Made by a program: the position numbers and the translations under genes. 64,000 nucleotides of DNA from Mobula hypostoma (taxonomy: Eukaryota), in contig NC_086104.1 of assembly GCF_963921235.1 (NCBI RefSeq), positions 118,172,001-118,236,000 of the forward strand, written 5' to 3'. The notes under the pieces are model-generated. The model made no database searches. It had not been told where the DNA came from and was given only the letters and a program-made list of their open reading frames with translations. This document shows, one piece after another, positions 86 through 43,680 of the stretch (positions within the stretch are counted from its first letter, which is position 1; each line of letters opens with the position of its first letter).

Positions 86-261
86 TCACCATTTACACTT
101 TATAGCTGCATATTCACTCTTCTCTTCATTCTGGTGATGTCTCTGATTTCTGTGAAGGTTTGAAATGCTGAAGGTGGAGTAGATCACCTTTTCCTCATGG
201 GGTGTGTGTTTGATGTCTTTCCTCTGGTGTCGGTAGACTGGTGCAAGTCTGGTTCCTGGAA
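86..261 (-). CDS. Siglec/MAG-like receptor, terminal exon 8 with tyrosine motifs VIYSTF and SEYAAI
   Basis: Acceptor caaccacag|, phase 1. Reads xPGTRLAPVYRHQRKDIKHTPHEEKVIYSTFSISNLHRNQRHHQNEEKSEYAAIKCKW*, with TGA at 86-88. The paired proximal/distal Tyr motifs 23 aa apart are typical of inhibitory Siglec tails. Confidence 0.88.
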
Positions 262-2031: not shown

Positions 2032-2079
2032 CGAACTCTCGTCCGCCTGTGCGTCAAACGGGAAGTTCTTCTTATTTTC
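2032..2079 (-). CDS. Siglec/MAG-like receptor, exon 6 (basic juxtamembrane tail, (R)KIRRTSRLTHRRTRV)
   Basis: Acceptor tattttatcattacttgttag|, strong donor TCG|gtgagt, 48 nt. The phase 2-2 frame is open and gives a stop-transfer basic cluster after the TM. Confidence 0.8.
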
Positions 2080-8510: not shown

Positions 8511-8854
8511 GTCCCTAATTAACTTTACTGAATTCCTTTTAGTACTTGTCATCACACAAGACTTTTCACTCGCAATAGCAGTGGTGTAATTCAACTCCAG
8601 ACTGAGTTCTATACTTCTACTCTCGTACCTCGAAGCAGGAAGCCAGCCTTCCTGGTGCCATTTTTACTGTTACTTTGTCAAATTGCCTGTAAACACCCAC
8701 TCTCTTCATTTCCACGGAATGGTCTGACCGTGAAGTCATTGCCTAAATAATTTCTCCCGAAGGCTCCCAGTTGTCAATTGTTTGAACGATTGCTTTTTTT
8801 TTTCATAATTTCAGTCGTCCTTTTATCTCAAATTCAATGTCGTAATGCACGAAC

Positions 8855-8939
8855 CTGTAGGCAAATAGAATCGTTAAGATCACGATGATCATCACTGCTG
8901 CTCTTCCTGCTGCAATGGCAAAGTCCCTCAGCAACGAAC
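8855..8939 (-). CDS. Siglec/MAG-like receptor, exon 5 (transmembrane: GSLLRDFAIAAGRAAVMIIVILTILFAYR)
   Basis: Acceptor ctagtttcag|, donor CAG|gttcgt, 85 nt, phase 1->2. About 22-residue hydrophobic segment. Not in the ORF track. Confidence 0.88.
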
Positions 8940-9895
8940 CTGAAACTAGTTACAATAAAGAGAATTTTAGTTCAGTAGCACATCACAATTCAAAACACAT
9001 TGGCATACCATACATGAGGAAAACAGCAGGCCAGGCAGCATCGTTAGAAAGGAATAAACAGTCGACGTTTCGGGCCGAGGCTGTTCATCGGGAACTGCTC
9101 AAAAGTGTCTTCCGAAACTTCGTCTGTTTATTCATTTCCATAGATGCTGCCTGAGCTCATAAGCTCCTCCAGCATTGTGCACGTGTTACTATGAATTTCT
9201 AGCAACAGTAGAATCTCTTGCGTTTACACCATGTTACATACCAGCCACGGCTGCAAAGAATGGGCACAACTAACACGAATGCAGTGCTTTGAACGACACT
9301 GAAACAAATGGAAGGACGTTTGCGCAGATGGATTTCTTTGAGGAGGTACATCCAAACTTCAAACATGTGATTTTTTGTAAACATGATGTTATTTTTTATA
9401 TATATATATACATAACGAAAGGAATGCTCTAATGACAATTTAGAAATGATTGCTCACGTTCTGGTGTTTGAACCCACAGATCGGCCTATGCTGTTAGGAG
9501 TGTTACACTACTTCGGGCAATGTAACTATTTTCGTGTGTACGATGAAGAAAACCAGAATTCAACGCGGAAAAGATCAAATAAAGATACAAAGCGATGTTG
9601 GAATCTTCAAATAAAGTAGCTGTTTCGTTACAAAAAGAAAAGGTGGCGTCATTTGTGCACTGCAATGTGCATAAGTGTGTGGGAAAATTTCAAACAATCG
9701 AAAAGGTATTGTATATAGATTGCGAAAGATTTGCAGAAAACAAAAGAGAAAGGAAATGAGAGTGCGTGAGAGAGGGAGAGGGAAAAGGAGACAGAGACAG
9801 AGAGGTTAAGAGCTAGAGAGACAGCTACGATCCCCCATGTTCAGCATTGCTGATCTTTCATTCTGTGATGGCAACAATTACACCTCAGTCCTTAC

Positions 9896-10183
9896 CTGAT
9901 GATTCGCGGTGGAATGTTCCGTTACTAGTACCGTGTACGTTCACCGCGACGCAGGAGATGAGTTGTCCGGCACCAGCCTGGTTACTCAATATCAGTGAGC
10001 CCTGCGTGACGAATTTATCCAACATGAAGCCGGTGACATGGAAACGTTTGCTCTGCCCGTATAGGGCCTTCCCATTGACTCTCCATGTGATGGTTGCTGG
10101 TGGTTTAGCTTTCACCTTACACGTACAGTTGATCCAGTTCTCAAGGCTTGTGCAGGTCGGGCCGGACACATTCTCGGGTGAAT
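9896..10183 (-). CDS. Siglec/MAG-like receptor, exon 4 (membrane-proximal C2-set Ig domain)
   Basis: Acceptor aattctttag|, donor CAG|gtaagg, 288 nt, phase 1-1. YSPENVSGPTCTSLENWINCTCKVKAKPPATITW..SCVAVNVHG resembles the C..CxC membrane-proximal domain of MAG/Siglec-5/10/11. Confidence 0.93.
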
Positions 10184-11169: not shown

Positions 11170-11480
11170 AGCATGCTGTGGGTACGTGACCAAATGTTTA
11201 AGGCATTGAACTAGTGATCTGAAGGTCGTGAGGTGGAGCCCCAGTCGAGGCAGCGTGTTGTGTCCTTGAGCAAGGCGCTTACCCACACAGTGCTCTGCGA
11301 CGACACTGGTGCCAAGCTGTTTCGGCACTTGCCCTTCCCTCAGACAACAACGGTGTTGTGGAGAGGGGAGACCTGCAGCATGGGCAACTGCCGGTCTTCC
11401 ATACAACCTTGCCCAATTAGTGAAGACTTTCCAGGCGCAGATCCATGTTCTCGCAAGCCGAACGAATGCCTATATCCAGC
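11170..11480 (+). mobile_element. tRNA-type SINE
   Basis: A/B-box-like head (gtgaccaaatgtttaagg..ggtcgtgaggtggagccc); body shared with the copy at 18432-18720. Confidence 0.75.
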
Positions 11481-12681
11481 ACGGAAAAGGGCCCCTTGGA
11501 CTTATTCACTCATGCTGAACAATCTGCTGCCCTGAGTCACACTCATTTGCCCTCGTTTAGTCCAAAACGCTCTATAACTTTCATATCCATGAAGCAAACA
11601 AATATCTATTAATTGTACTCCCTTCTACTACACCCTCAAGCAGCAAGTTGCCGAAACCTTCTGTTATTTGCGTAAAGAATGTTGCCCTTCATGCCCGCAT
11701 TAAATCTGGGCCCTCAAGCGGCACGATGAGAAAGGGATTTGCCTAGATCCGCTCTGCCAATAGTCATCGGAGTTTTATGAAGCCCCACTACTCCGCTTTA
11801 GATAAAACAGAACCGCCCATCTACTCTCTCCACCTGTCGAGTCCCGTGAATCGTGCTTGCACACTCCTTAACTTAATCAGATGTTCCCTGTACTATGGCG
11901 AAGATAATTGCCCACAATGAACCAATTTTATCAAATTGCCTCCTGTGCATTCAAAAATTAAGTAATTTGATATTCGTCAGAGAGGTTTTATTGCAAGAGA
12001 CGTCAGAAAATCCGTTTGCATGCTTATGGCAAGGAGAGGTCAATCTGTCGTTGGGTCTTAAGAAAACGTGGTCGCTGCGTGAGAGAAAAAAAAATCTGCG
12101 GTCAGAACCCAGTCACGACAATGTATGCAAACTGGGCGGGCACGGGGCAATTGGTCCGGTTCTGATGCGCTGCGTTGTTTCATTGCTAATTCTTGATTTT
12201 GGAGCACTCATCGCTAATGTGCCTACACTGGTACAAAATAAAAATAATTAAGGGCAGTGGCAAAGCCCTCGAGCAGTTCAGTACATAACAATCTTCAGGT
12301 CAATTGTAGAAGCTTAACAATAGGCCCATCCAGTCGCGAAATCACTGTTGGCATTAATTTGTGACTGACACGCTACTCGTAACCTTTTGAAAGGTATTGT
12401 CAGAAACCATGGAAACACCAGTGCCACCCCGAGAGACCCTCCACGTCAATGAGATTAATGTAGCAGAGCAAGCTGCTTGGCAGAATAATACAGGGTCCAC
12501 TCCGATATCTAAATGTAAACCTTACCCCGCAATCATCACTTCGGACTGCATATCCTCGCCCCCTTAAACCATAAGACCAGAAAAGTATTAAGGAACATTA
12601 AAGGAAATAATTATTATTTAAGGAAAGCTGCGGGTGAATTCCTGTTCACCATTATTGACTATAGCTTTGAGAAACACTCAC

Positions 12682-12984
12682 AGTGAACATCCAGCGTAAA
12701 ATATGCCGTATTTCTCCCGCTGGTACCATCCGTTGTAAGTTCACAACCAATACGTTTACTGTCATGGTTCGGTGAAGGAGTGAATGTGAATTTGGTGGAG
12801 ATATTCTGAGGACTCTGAATAGTCTTGCCGTTTTCTTTTGAACCTTGAGTAATTGCCATCAGTTCTTCGTCGAGAATCCATTTTAACCTGAATCGGGCGG
12901 ATGGACAACTGTGATTTAGTGAGCAGGTCAAGTAGCTCATTCGCCCAGCGATGACGTCTTGAGGAACTGATATCTGTGGTTCAG
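12682..12984 (-). CDS. Siglec/MAG-like receptor, exon 3 (C2-set Ig domain 2)
   Basis: Acceptor tttattaacag|, donor ACT|gtgagt, 303 nt, phase 1-1. EPQISVP..LTCSLNHSCP..W..FTFTPS..HDSKRIGC is the typical Siglec domain-2 pattern, with the interdomain Cys in HSCP. Confidence 0.95.
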
Positions 12985-13232
12985 CTGTTAATAAAGGTAA
13001 TTGATATATCATGAAATACTTTATTGGTAATTTGTTTTTTTATTGAAGTTGATCATCAAACAATCATTTCCCTAAGATGTACTTCAGATGCTGTGCATAT
13101 AATATCATACAATAATATTTGTCAAATACTTTTAATTCAAAAATAAAATAATTGGAAGATTATTGTCTCACTCCTCGGTAGGACAGATTTGCACCGTCAA
13201 TATTAACTCAATGTAATAAAATCGCAATCGCC

Positions 13233-13945
13233 TGTTAGAACCATAGAACCATAGAACATTACAGCACAGAAACCAGGCCATTCGGCCCTACGACTCTGTG
13301 CCGAAAATTTATTCCGCTTGTCCCATTGACCTGCACCCAGTCCATAATCCTCCAGACCTCTCCCATCCATGTACCTATCCAATTTATTCTTAAAACTTAA
13401 GAGTGAGCACGCATTTACCACTTCAGGTGGCAGCTCGTTCCACACTCCTACAACAATCTGAGTGACGAAGTCCCCCCTAATGTTCCCTCTGAACCTTTCC
13501 CCTTTCACCCTAAAGCCATGTCCTCTCGTATTTTTCTCTCCTAATCTAAGTGGAAAGAGTCTATTCGCATTTACTCTGTCTATACCCCTCATAATTTTGT
13601 AAACCTCTATCAAATCTCCCCTTATTCTTCTACGTTCCAAGGATAAAGTTCGAACCTGTTCAATCTTTCCCTCTAACTCAACTCCTGAAGACGCGGCAAC
13701 ATCCTAGGAAATCTTCTCTGCACTCTTGCAATCTTACTGAAATCCTTCCTACAGTTAGGTGTCCAGAACTGCACACAATACTCCAAATTTGGCCTCACCA
13801 ATGTCCGATACAACCTCACCATAACATCCCAACTCCTATACCCAGTACATTGATTAATGAATACCAGGATGCCAAAAGCCTTCTTTACAAACCTGCCTAC
13901 CTGTGACGCCACTTTCAGGGAATTATGTATCTGAACTCCCAGATC
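13233..13945 (-). mobile_element. CR1 3' fragment
   Basis: ORFs 13203-13640 and 13673-13912 (RPNLEYCVQFW, RGDLIEVYKIM); tail (ACCATAGA)n on the plus strand. Confidence 0.92.
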
Positions 13946-14511
13946 CCTTTGCTCTCGGTGTTTTCAGTGTTTCCCGGCGGCAAGATGAAGTCGCCATTCA
14001 ACAGCAATGGTAAATAAAATAAGAAAAGGATAAGCGGAACGGCAATTATTGCAGTGGACTAGTCCTAGAGTCCTGAGGCTTTGGTTCCCGAGTTTCAACA
14101 ATAAGAGGTCTTAAGTACATTGTTATAGCAGTGCTAATGGATTCAGAGGCTGTATTATCTATTTTTTGATTGTTTGTTATTCGGCACTCTGGGAGACGTC
14201 CAGCCTCCCGGGTAGACAGACCTGCACCACAGGTAGCTAGAACACAGTGAGTAGGGGAATAGAATAGATTAGAACATGAGATTAGATTATGAGGAATACA
14301 ATAGATGCCTGGCTATAATAGATGTTATCATATCAACAATAAATCGGGGTCACCAGCTAACAAATATTCGGACAGCTGTAGGTGCAAAACCAAAGGTTGG
14401 AGAAGAAACACGGGAGACGATATGCATCGATATAAATAATGCGTATATACATAATACTTATCTGTAAAGTTTCAATGTAAACTAGAAACGCAGCTCTAAG
14501 AGAAAACTTAC

Positions 14512-14880
14512 TTATAACAGAAACTGTGACGCAGCCATGTTCTTTTCCCTTCGGTATCCCCCTTAGGTTTCCAAAGGTCACCCTGAAGCAATAGACGCCT
14601 TTGTCAGCAAAGCTGACGCCTTTAATCCGTAAGGAACATCCATTCTGAGCTAGGTTGCCAGTGAATTCTGCTCGTCGTTCATAAGTAGAGGATATTTTTC
14701 CATTCTCGTAGATAGCAAAGACCTCTTTCTCCAGAGGATCATATCCCCCTTTTAACCACATACCGCTTGGGTTATAGAGTCCCGTCCTCTGGTCAAATGT
14801 GCACTGGATCTCCATACAGCTACCGTACACAGCCCAGAGTGTCCGCGGAACATTCACAGAAAGTGACATAGTCTGTACAA
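14512..14880 (-). CDS. Siglec/MAG-like receptor, exon 2 (V-set Ig domain)
   Basis: Acceptor tttgtttcag|, donor TAA|gtaagt, 369 nt, phase 1-1. Carries the Siglec signatures GSCxxIxCxF, the E-strand Cys (NGCSLRI) and DxGxYxFR with the essential Arg (codon 14582-14584). Confidence 0.95.
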
Positions 14881-15836: not shown

Positions 15837-15879
15837 CTGTAGCATGAAACAGAATGGAAATCAGCAGAGCAAATGCCAT
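15837..15879 (-). CDS. Siglec/MAG-like receptor, coding exon 1 (signal peptide MAFALLISILFHAT)
   Basis: Kozak context acaaccATGG. Hydrophobic 14 codons + 1 nt, then a phase-1 donor CAG|gtatgc. An upstream acceptor (tttttaattttcag|) at 15898-15899 implies a further 5' UTR exon. Joins in frame to the V exon (G|TT = Val). Confidence 0.88.
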
Positions 15880-29771: not shown

Positions 29772-29920
29772 NNNNNNNNNNNNNNNNNNNNNNNNNNNNN
29801 NNNNNNNNNNNNNNNNNNNNNNNNNNNNNNNNNNNNNNNNNNNNNNNNNNNNNNNNNNNNNNNNNNNNNNNNNNNNNNNNNNNNNNNNNNNNNNNNNNNN
29901 NNNNNNNNNNNNNNNNNNNN
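29772..29920. other. Assembly gap (149 N)
   Basis: Directly visible. Confidence 0.99.
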
Positions 29921-39278: not shown

Positions 39279-42200
39279 CTAAAAAAAAATGGTCTCCTGA
39301 AGAACAAAATTTTAACAATTAGCAATTTACACAAAGAAAATACAAAGGTATACAGTTTACTAAATACACAATATATAGACTTTTATCTTTCAGCACTTTA
39401 CCAGCTAACTTACAGCAAGAGTGTTTCAAATGTTAAAATTCCACTCCATTAAAAAAAAAATCAGTGTACATTTAACATCTGGATAGACAAGCATCGATCC
39501 AATTATCTTTGCCCTTAATATGAATGATGAAAATTTTGTACTTCTGTAACATTAAACTGCATTACTAAATTGGAGTTTAATTTCCTTAACCCTTTTTCTT
39601 AACAGTCACAGAGGCATGACCAAATTCACTTTTAGCTAAGTTAATAGTTAAGATAAATTTTGAAAGTCTCTCAAATAGTCTCTCCACCGCAGTAATACGT
39701 GTTTTCCACGTATTATTTCTATTAACTAAATCATCAATATAGGCATCTGTATCTTTTAATTCCTGAATCAAGCTAGCAAGCATCCTCTGAAAAGCACCTG
39801 GTGCATTCTCCATCCCAAATGGAAGAACATTATAAACATATAACCCAGATTGAGGTACAAATGCCGATATCACTCAACCTCTATCTGTCCAATGGAACAC
39901 ACCAATAACCTTTTAACAAATCAAGCTTTGTAAGGAATTTGGCTTGTCCAACTTTATCCACACAATCATCTACGCTAGGGATTGGATATGCATCATTTTT
40001 TTTCACAGCATTCACTTTCCTGTAATCTGTACAAAACCTAATACTATTGTCTAGCTTCGGCACCATAACAGACGGTGAACTCCAATTCGAATTAGAATGT
40101 CTAATAATATCATTCTCTAACATATACTTAATCTCTTGTTCCACAAGGTCACATTTTTCCCTGTTCATTCGATATGGATGTTGTTTTATGGGTTTTGCAT
40201 CTCCAACATCTACATCATGTGTAGCTACGGTGGTTCTTCTAGGGACGACTGGAAATAAATGTCTATATTTAAAAATTAACTGTTTCATCTGCTCTCTCTC
40301 TGCTCTGGCTGCAAATGAGCTGATTTTACATCAATATTTTCGAGAATTTTTGAAGTTGGTAACCTAGCTGGAATAATGTTTGGTTTAAAATGAGTTTCAC
40401 ATGAATCATCCATTAAGTTTTTATCAAGATCAGATTCATTATTGATCACAACAGTCATAGTAGCAGCATTTATCTCATCATATGGGGTTCTCATGTTTAT
40501 ATGACACAGCTGTGTTGTCTTTCTTCGATTTGTTTTTTTTTTGTTTTTTTTTAACCACGTAATCCACATCATTTATTTTAAATTTAATATCATAAGGACC
40601 GTGACATTTAGCTTGTAATGGGTTCGTTAGCACCGGAAAAAGAACCAACACGTTATCTCCAGACTTAAATGACCTCATCCTAGCTTCCTTATCATACCAA
40701 GTCTTCATCTTCTCTTGAGCTAATTTTATTTTTTCTTTTGCCAAGCTACAAGCTTTGTATAATATTTCCTTAAATTTTAAAACATAATCTAGCAGGTAAG
40801 TGTGTACCTCTTTATTAATCCACTGTTCCTTCAACAAGGCTAAAGGTCCTCGAACTCTATGCCCAAACACAAGTTCAAAAGGACTAAAATCTAATGATTC
40901 CTGTACTGCCTCTCTTACTGTAAAAAGTATTAAATGTATACCTTCAGGACAGTCCTTTTCATTTTCCATGCAATATGTCCAAATCATACTTTTTAATGTA
41001 GAATGAAATCTCTCCAAGGTTGCCTGTGATTCTGGGTGATAAACTGATGAAATAATCTGTTTTGCTCCCAGTTTATAGACTATCTGCTGAAACAATCCAG
41101 ACATGAAATTACAACCTTTGATCCGATTGAATTTCCATTGGTAACCCAAAACAAGTAAAGAAGTTTATAACAGCCTTTGTCACAGTTCTGGCTACTGTAT
41201 TCCTTAGAGGTACTGCCTCTGGAAACCTTGATGCTGTGCACCTGATAGTTAACAAATATTGATGTCCAGTTTTAGCTGTTGGCAAAGGGCCGACACAGTC
41301 TACAATCATTTTTGAAAACTGCTCACCAAATCCTGGAATTGGATGCAGTGGGGCCACTGGAGTAACTTGATTAGGTTTACCCACAATTTGTCACGTATTA
41401 CACGTTCTACAAAATGTCGCCACATCTTTTCTTAACCTAGGCCAATAAAAATGTTTAGAAACCTTGTTCATAGTTTTCTTTAAACATTAATGACCACCCA
41501 AAGAAATACGATGAGCCATAGTTAAAATCTCACATAGATATATTTTAGGAACTCCTATCTGATGATTAACTTCTCGTTCTTCACCAGCAGGAATTGTAGG
41601 CGATCTCTACTTTCTCATTAATCCTCCCTTTTCAAAATAATATCCTACTGGTATTTTTTCAATTTCACTATCTGAAAGAGCTTGATCCTTTAATTAATCT
41701 ATCTCAGGATCTCTATCCTGCTCTGCTATCATCTCCTTCCGAGATAAAGACAAATCTTCCTGGTCAGACTTACCACCAAAATCCTGGTCAATTAATGTTG
41801 GTAAGAAAGTTTCTGACGCATCCTCAGAATTCGAATCTTGAATTGAATAGTCATGGTTAACAACCTCATCCTGTACATCAATATTTTAAGCCATAGCTCT
41901 TGTTACAACACAGGAAGAATCTGTGTTAGAATCCATCTGTGGTTCCTCAGAGTTAGGATTTATTGTCAAATGCGCTTCAGGAAAAACTTGTCTACCTGCT
42001 AAATCATTCCCTAACAAAAGAGAAACATCATTCACAGGTAATCTGGATTGAAGTCCAACTTTAACAACCCCTGTAACTAACCCTGACCTTAAATTTACTC
42101 TGCGTAAATGTACTGGCATAAGGTCACTCCCAACTTCTCTTATATAATCTCACTCATTAGTGTGAGACTCATCACTAAACTTTAGCACACTGTCTAATAT

Positions 42201-43680
42201 TGGTGATTGAGAAGCTCCAGTATCTCTAAGTATTCTTATTGGTACGGAATTGGACCCTTCTTTCAAGGATACCAATCCTCCTATTATAAAAATGTCATAT
42301 CTGTTCTTAACTTGTCCAGACACTGACACATCTTCATTAGTATTTATCAAACTCTGTGAATTTACAGGTGTTTCAATATGTTGCACACATGCATCTGCGA
42401 CGGCTTCTTTCTCTTTTATTTTTCAATCGAAAGCAGTTAGCTACTACATGTCGAGGTTTCATACAATAATTACAAATAATACCAAATTGTCTTTTCTTCA
42501 CATGTCTCCCTTCATCCTTACTTTTCTCACTAACTTCAGATTTAATTTCAGGTTTACCTTGACTCTCTGTGCTATTTTTCCTTTTAAAATTTCTACCTGG
42601 AGAAAATTTATTCTTATGAATTAAAGCATATTCATCAGCTAACTTCGCAGTCTCCTGCAATGTAGCAGTGTCTCTTTCATTTAAGTATGTTCTCACTTCA
42701 ACAGAACCGTTTCTTCTAAATTCCTCCAGTAAAATCAACTCTTTTAATTTATTATACTCCCCATTCACATTTTTAGAGGAAACCCATCTCTCAAAACACA
42801 CAGATTTCTCCAAGGCAAATTTCACATAAGTTTTTGTTTTCCACAGATTTCTTCAAATTTCTGTATCTTTCCCGAAACCAACTCATATGCCTTTAACATA
42901 TGCTGTTTAACAAAATCATAATCCAGTGCTTGCTCAGCAGTTAAAGCTGCATAAACTTGTTGTGCCTTGACTTTAATTAAACTTTGTAACATCACTGGCC
43001 ATTGCTCTTTCGGCCACCCTAAACTCAGAGCAATAGTTTCGAAATGCTGGAAATATTTGTCCACTTCAGCTTCATTAAATGGAGGAGCCAAAATAACCTC
43101 ACGAATAGCAATAAACTGTTTCTTAGAACCAGAAGACTGATTTCCCCTCCTTAATTTCTCCATCCCTAACTCAAATTTCTTCTGGTTTCCAGCTTCACTT
43201 TCTTTAAATTCCCTTACTTTACTTTCCTCTCTTTCTTTAAATTCCATTAATTTATTTGCCTCTCTTTCATCAAATTCCCTTTTTTTTTATTAGTCTCTCT
43301 TTCGGCCATTTCCGCTTTAAATCTTTCAAACTTTATCTGTTCAAGACGTAACTGCATTTCCAGATTACTCTTTGGAAACCTACCTAACACATCATCATCA
43401 AACGTTTTCAAACGGATATAATGTTCAGCGATTTTCCTTTGTATTAAAACCTTTGAGGTATTCTTCGTAATTCCCTTAATATCCAACTTCCTAGCAATCT
43501 CCAACACCTCAGGTTTTCACGCATTCATTAAAAACACCAGGTCAGGCGTGTCCATAAACTCGTCACATTCATTGCTGCCGAATGCCACTCACACACCAAC
43601 CGAACCAAAAAAAAAACGGGTATATCCCTTATCCAAATCAGAATGACAATTACCAGCACTTAAACTCAAAATCGAAACAT

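Follow-up and report, generated by a model that had tools for sequence, protein, structure and literature searches.

Paired activating and inhibitory receptors are thought to arise repeatedly under pathogen pressure, and the worked examples come nearly all from mammals and birds. A Siglec-like gene of the ray Mobula hypostoma encodes an arginine inside its transmembrane (TM) helix, and ITIM-type motifs lie downstream in the same DNA. A sequence-only reading of this DNA had combined both features in one chain and had proposed either a dual-signalling receptor or an intermediate on the way to a paired activating receptor. The question is whether the charged helix and the inhibitory-type tail belong to one chain or to two different forms of the receptor. 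The window analysed here is a stretch of 64,000 nucleotides (NC_086104.1, positions 118,172,001 to 118,236,000); all positions given below count from its first letter.

Organization of the gene

One Siglec-like gene lies on the minus strand of the window, from 15879 down to 86; its exons were worked out from the sequence (Table 1). This Siglec-like gene of M. hypostoma encodes, in this order, a signal peptide, a V-set domain, two C2 domains and a TM helix, and the stretch from the TM exon to exon 6 measures 6,908 nt. The V exon matches the Pfam families V-set (3e-10) and Ig_CD22 (1.6e-5). Sialoadhesin is among its best solved relatives (3.6e-6), and phmmer aligns the Arg of CFRV on the Arg of the sialoadhesin motif FRF; further matches are Siglec-7, -8 and -10, CD33, CD22 and MAG. 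As in other members of the Siglec family, the N-terminal V-set domain is predicted to carry the conserved sialic acid-binding Arg of the F-strand, and the two C2-type exons, the signal exon and one hydrophobic span correspond to C2-set domains and a single-pass helix in type I topology. The spliced product is identical to RefSeq XP_062911968.1 (P0154), named 'Schwann cell myelin protein-like' of M. hypostoma, and the gene is therefore already annotated in RefSeq. Of the sequencing runs compared with the window, X1 and X2 are RNA of M. hypostoma, and X9 (DNA) and X12 (RNA) come from a close relative, referred to as organism B.

Table 1. Features of the Siglec-like gene in the window, with the evidence for each.
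Feature	Position	Strand	Evidence
Exon 1, signal peptide (MAFALLISILFHAT plus 1 nt)	15837..15879	-	ATG, hydrophobic run, CAG/GTATGC donor; equals the P0154 N-terminus
V-set exon, Siglec-type F-strand Arg (CFRV)	14512..14880	-	Pfam, sialoadhesin alignment, RNA junction 14512/12984
First C2-set exon	12682..12984	-	Pfam C2-set_2; both junctions in spliced contigs (X1 record 1, X2 record 14, X12 record 8)
Second C2-set exon	9896..10183	-	Pfam Ig_3/I-set; junction 12682/10183; contig continuing past 9896
TM exon	8855..8945	-	Sequence; RNA pieces span to 8945/6 and end at about 8853-8855; RefSeq models read VSGSLLRD
Arg codon AGA, alternative ATA (Ile) through plus-strand 8903 C>A	8902..8904	-	Sequence; variant depths
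Following codon GCA (Ala), linked to the Arg codon; ACA (Thr) together with Ile	8899..8901	-	8901 C>T depths equal those at 8903; P0153 reads GIT
Read-through of the TM donor (RefSeq model, M. hypostoma), 17 residues, stop at 8805-8803	8803..8854	-	P0154 C-terminus equals the read-through translation; CDS span 7077 nt
Exon 6, 48 nt, basic stop-transfer segment (R-KIRRTSR...)	2032..2079	-	ttag/G acceptor, CG/GTGAGT donor; P0153 reads YRKIRRTSR, then the window's other frame
Last exon, acceptor ttccag/G at 255 as in the manta model	86..255	-	P0153 tail; frame translation

Apart from the gene, the window is rich in repeats. High-copy repeats in the introns at 9000-9199, 11200-11599 and 13200-13999 reach word depths of thousands in RNA and of up to 1.8 million in DNA, and they inflate any share-of-words measure for the gene; word shares in 60-2100, which are inflated by repeats, were left out of the evidence for the tail exons. 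On the minus strand at 39589-43516, a series of long open frames resembles a decayed LTR retrotransposon; distributed over several frames, it contains stretches of the gag, protease (DTGAS), reverse-transcriptase and integrase type. The rest of the window contains numerous fragments of LINE reverse transcriptases and of Tc1/mariner elements, and a run of 149 N at 29772-29920 is an assembly gap or a mask.

The arginine lies inside the transmembrane helix

The sequence-only reading had described a TM exon at 8855-8939 that encodes FAIAAG-R-AAVMIIVILTILFAY, with the Arg codon AGA at 8904-8902. Minus-strand translation of 8937-8855 agrees with this peptide, and the exon is real; its start, however, was found 6 nt further upstream, because RNA pieces extend as far as 8945/6 and Val-Ser-Gly-Ser is present at this point in both RefSeq models, so that the exon comprises 8945-8855 and gains Val-Ser. 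Expression of the exon was borne out by RNA: record 1 of X1 joins 14512/12984 and 12682/10183 and extends 49 nt past 9896, and spliced contigs from two M. hypostoma runs continue from 9896 into the TM exon. The AGA codon is also present in the reads, where the Arg letter at 8903 accounts for 37.3 of 37.3 depth in X1 and for 18.1 of 22.3 in X2, and P0154 has the same residues as the window at the Arg site.

The Arg is residue 7 of the 22 residues between the flanking Asp and Arg-Lys and thus occupies the outer third of the helix, in line with the earlier placement. Hydrophobicity was calculated with the Kyte-Doolittle and Wimley-White scales, and the best 19- and 21-residue windows both contain the Arg. 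Just 15 hydrophobic residues follow it, which are too few for a helix that leaves the Arg outside, and the residue is therefore placed within the span. A basic residue inside the membrane helix is a hallmark of adaptor-coupled receptors of the FcR-gamma or DAP12 type, and we take the depth of this Arg to resemble that of FcR-gamma-coupled receptors.

Two further observations concern the TM exon. Its donor is weak (CAG/GTTCGT with T at +3, 8846-8860); the RefSeq model of M. hypostoma reads through it and the manta model splices it. Near 8927, two X1 contigs (depths 14.6 and 8.6) end close to 8897 and a third begins about 30 nt upstream; in a 31-mer graph, such contig ends suggest another heterozygous position at about 8927, within the outer-flank Arg codon.

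Two forms of the transmembrane exon in two Mobula species

The Arg codon is not the only version of this site. In a second, linked form, plus-strand 8903 C>A changes AGA to ATA (Arg to Ile), and 8901 C>T changes GCA to ACA (Ala to Thr); the alternative codon is hence ATA and not GGA, from which the sequence-only reading had derived the Arg by a single substitution. At 8903, the Ile-Thr form contributes 4.17 of 22.3 depth in X2, where it forms a minor contig, and 0 of 37.3 in X1. In organism B, it makes up 36.9 of 110 in the DNA of X9 (about a third) and 16.1 of 16.1 in the RNA of X12; the RNA of this organism thus contains the Ile form only, and the remainder of its DNA carries Arg. The Ile form of organism B has an additional Ile to Val change at 8889, and it equals XP_072123308.1 (P0153) of Mobula birostris in every residue of the TM exon and in the V-domain sites checked.

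The Arg-Ala contig of X9 carries letters specific to organism B (8938T, 8975A and an extra A at 8991) and is therefore a haplotype of that species rather than carry-over from M. hypostoma. Conversely, the Ile contig of X2 lacks the change at 8889 and is therefore not manta contamination. With carry-over and contamination set aside, the same two-letter difference exists in both species: Arg-Ala and Ile-Thr are two old versions of the TM exon, and both are present in M. hypostoma and in a manta relative.

Variation is also found elsewhere in the gene. At 12807 and 12826 in the C2 exon, both M. hypostoma RNA runs differ from the assembly, and about 10 of 850 exon positions distinguish X1 from X2; there are therefore at least three M. 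hypostoma haplotypes, which are about 1% apart. In the F-G region of the V exon (14512-14650), the sites 14561 and 14571 are amino acid polymorphisms in ligand-side loops that are common to both species: the main contig of X2 and organism B have Glu and Ser where the window and X1 have Gly (GGA) and Arg (AGG). The V exon differs from that of organism B by 8-9%, compared with about 3% in many intron pieces, and nearly all of these differences change a residue (13 of 123 between P0153 and P0154). This pattern looks like diversifying selection or gene conversion.

The cytoplasmic tail and the ITIM frame

The frame which contains VIYSTF (187-170) and SEYAAI (118-101) is open in the window haplotype, with no stop before its end at 88-86. 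The sequence-only reading had a reconstructed transcript end in these motifs; the motifs exist, but their presence in the same transcript as the Arg exon was not confirmed. From the TM exon through exon 6, the ITIM frame is reached only via an acceptor at 248 or via an unsupported extra exon. An ab initio search between 2031 and 275 for an exon 7 with the needed phases yielded weak, repeat-like candidates only, and the P0153 orthologue does without any such exon. No transcript-derived fragments that link TM and tail were found in a protein search with the last-exon peptide.

In the manta protein P0153, the TM exon is followed by YRKIRRTSR, by the other frame of the window's exon 6 (FDAQADESS), by EPDLHQ... 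and finally by VIYSAF ... SEYAAIKCK. The window DNA would encode this tail only with an additional T in the run 2058-2056 and with the CA-run at 210-201 shortened by eight letters. If M. hypostoma follows the manta splice sites (donor 2032, acceptor 255), the window haplotype would encode a strongly basic tail of 36 residues without Tyr, which ends at a stop at 197-195, ten bases before VIYSTF. The ITIMs would then be missed because exon 6 is one nucleotide shorter than that of the manta, which shifts the frame to this stop. In the RefSeq model P0154, the TM donor is read through to the stop at 8805-8803, which adds 17 residues and no ITIM. The acceptor gaaccag/A at 248, which lies 7 nt downstream of 255, would keep the frame open all the way from the TM exon to the stop at 88-86, as the frame changes relative to the manta (-1 in exon 6, +8 in the CA-run and -7 at the acceptor) cancel each other. 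A short tail without motifs is thus obtained with the orthologue splice sites or the RefSeq model and is absent with acceptor 248. Among the two RefSeq models, the Ile chain P0153 has an ITIM tail with VIYSAF and SEYAAI, and the Arg chain P0154 has a short tail without ITIM; the only documented ITIM-bearing chain carries Ile, and neither model combines a charged helix with ITIMs.

In X2 and X12, the summed depth of the bin 8800-8999 is in line with coverage of the exon alone, and we therefore think, by what is a rough argument, that the TM donor at 8855 is used in M. hypostoma. The differences in exon 6 and in the CA-run may be differences between the species rather than between the Arg lineage and the Ile lineage.

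A third motif was noticed near exon 6. On the minus strand at 1891-2079, the other frame of this exon runs for 63 codons without a stop, across the GTGAGT donor, and includes VSYSDL, a match to the ITIM consensus. VSYSDL lies past the exon 6 donor, in the frame that the manta uses in the second half of exon 6 and not in that of the window haplotype, and an unspliced transcript of the manta type would carry it. This open frame could be due to chance (roughly 1 in 10 at this ORF length), or it could be a vestige.

Alleles of one locus or separate genes

The Arg and Ile forms could be allelic lineages of one locus, which we favour by a modest degree over separate genes or genes that vary by presence and absence. 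With P0153 as query, just one protein of this type was recovered from each RefSeq protein set, next to a paralogue group of 54% identity; the presence of a single form in each annotation favours allelic lineages. No second gene was called within 10 kb, and no paralogous TM exon or second gene copy was found within the window. The summed X9 DNA depth at the TM exon is 110, similar to single-copy introns and flanks (75-115). At two intron places (records 23/24 and 25/26), the two X9 contigs depart from the window by about 3% and about 7%, respectively, as expected of two old lineages.

A less probable but serious alternative is that Arg and Ile belong to two genes, either recent or gene-converted paralogues or KIR-like copies that are present in some chromosomes and absent from others, one of which is missing or collapsed in each reference assembly. 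The X9 depth is split 73:37 between Arg and Ile, about 2:1 and not 1:1, although contig depths are crude measures; the exon bins of X9 (126-165) are somewhat deeper than the intron bins (75-115), and X1 contains Arg alone, with both forms in X2. All three observations would suit two genes, which would have to be reconciled with the single member per protein set, the lack of a neighbour gene within 10 kb and the single-copy depth of the TM exon.

The paralogue group comprises P0002, P0151 and P0152, from M. hypostoma, M. birostris and Hypanus sabinus; the paralogue lies on the same chromosome as the gene, outside the window. It has Thr at the Arg column and, towards the inner side of its helix, a Lys (ILTKIFAY); two of the models have a short basic tail.

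Function of the two forms

The reading that we put first, with somewhat less than even confidence, is that the Arg form is an activating-type receptor paired with an inhibitory Ile form. The Ile version, with its ITIM-type tail, would be the inhibitory form, and the Arg version in the window would most likely work as its activating-type partner. The buried Arg would pair with an acidic residue of an ITAM adaptor, which we infer from the general rule for such receptors (PMC6890642, PMC3601082). The tail of the Arg version would be free of ITIMs through the frameshift in exon 6 described above. This reading was put first because a basic helix residue and an ITIM-removing frame change occur on one haplotype, because the documented ITIM chain carries Ile, and because parallels exist in sharks. 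Of the two proposals of the sequence-only reading, the birth of a paired activating receptor fits better, as Arg and Ile forms coexist in two species and some shark relatives have a membrane Arg together with a tail that is short or lacks Tyr; the single chain with charged helix and ITIMs was not upheld, since neither public model of the gene combines both and the orthologue splice sites lead to a stop before the ITIMs.

A more specific version of the activating-inhibitory pair appears possible, although we would not call it probable. One locus in Mobula rays would hold two allelic lineages of ancient origin, both maintained in at least two species: an inhibitory one (Ile-Thr, ITIM tail) and an activating-type one (Arg-Ala, frameshifted tail without ITIM). 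Such a locus would be a cartilaginous-fish counterpart of KIR3DL1/3DS1 under long-term balancing selection, and the ligand-binding loops, too, would have amino acid polymorphisms common to the species.

Dual signalling, as the sequence-only reading had proposed, has perhaps half the appeal of the activating-inhibitory pair and is rated as unlikely. Here, the Arg chain would also contain VIYSTF and SEYAAI, reached via acceptor 248 or an unseen small exon, and would engage both an ITAM adaptor and SHP phosphatases in the manner of CHIR-AB or KIR2DL4. The stop-free ITIM frame of the window haplotype, which acceptor 248 joins without interruption as far as the natural stop at 88-86, is consistent with such a chain, and three frame changes that sum to zero are what selected compensation would produce; furthermore, bifunctional receptors built in this way are known from birds and humans (PMC3601082). 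However, the manta acceptor at 255 leads the window haplotype to the stop at 197-195, the RefSeq model of the gene has no ITIM, the ab initio search gave no convincing exon 7, and the sole documented ITIM-bearing chain is the Ile chain. In addition, the Phe at +3 places VIYSTF outside the ITIM consensus given in PMC7226832.

It is still less likely that the polymorphism is functionally silent, in which case the Arg would snorkel to the outer head-group region and bind no adaptor, and both forms would signal alike via whatever tail they have. A silent change would be compatible with the position of the Arg, which just 6-7 residues separate from the outer end of the span, with the lack of fixation in both species, and with the Thr of the nearest paralogue at this column. 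Neutral variants, however, rarely persist as two linked changes in two species whose DNA is about 3-4% apart here; the 15 hydrophobic residues after the Arg speak for a buried position, and a membrane Arg recurs with short tails in distant relatives. An assembly or sequencing error at the Arg codon, for which nothing was found, was ruled out for practical purposes, as two RNA runs and the DNA of the related species all yield contigs with AGA.

Significance and comparison with known receptors

If both states are old shared variants of a ray Siglec-like gene, the same solution would have been reached in the oldest jawed vertebrates. Should the activating-inhibitory pair be real, both of the usual steps, in which a charge is gained in the membrane and the ITIM frame is lost, would have been caught on one haplotype; should one chain signal in both directions, it would be the first bifunctional Siglec. 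Arg and Ile provide a clean natural pair for adaptor-coupling tests in cartilaginous fish. Either way, the gene is already in RefSeq, and the claim of the sequence-only reading as written is not established. What is new is the Arg/Ile dimorphism common to both species, together with its possible link to tail loss; the kind of system to which these observations belong is known.

According to a survey of fish Siglecs, only Siglec-1, CD22, MAG and Siglec-15 occur regularly in fish (PMC7226832), and no description of Siglec pairs in sharks or rays was found in the literature searched. A membrane Arg is found in three Siglec-like shark proteins, XP_072326180.1 (Scyliorhinus torazame), XP_048476508.1 (Rhincodon typus) and XP_078392811.1 (Cetorhinus maximus). 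Their V-set domains are related to that of the ray gene, and they have an Arg 6-8 residues into the hydrophobic span and a tail that is short or free of Tyr; however, their V domains are only 28-40% identical, their domain numbers differ, and they are predicted models only. Other relatives have uncharged helices and two Tyr motifs ending in ...EYAAI.

A basic helix residue and a long tail with two ITIMs are combined in one chain in CHIR-AB/TILR-AB and KIR2DL4 (PMC3601082), whereas the documented ITIM chain of the ray carries Ile and the documented Arg chain has no ITIM. Mouse CD33 has a membrane Lys and depends on Dap12 (PMC6890642), but it is a CD33-related mammalian Siglec in which the Lys is fixed in the species. 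Paired receptors are formed by Siglec-5/Siglec-14 and Siglec-11/Siglec-16. The ectodomains of these partners are kept similar, one partner has ITIMs and the other is activating and has a charged helix, and the activating partner is polymorphic in the population (PMC4042635, PMC5701461). The primate pairs are separate neighbouring genes homogenised by gene conversion, whereas the ray reference assemblies hold one gene each.

Another close counterpart is the human pair KIR3DL1/KIR3DS1, whose inhibitory and activating forms behave as alleles of one locus. The activating form has a basic residue in the helix, a tail without ITIMs and an ectodomain closely similar to that of the inhibitory form. 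KIRs, however, are a family of C2-type Ig receptors which bind MHC class I and couple to DAP12 through a central Lys, whereas the ray gene is Siglec-like, has its Arg near the outer leaflet, and is proposed here to have undergone tail loss in one of two allelic forms.
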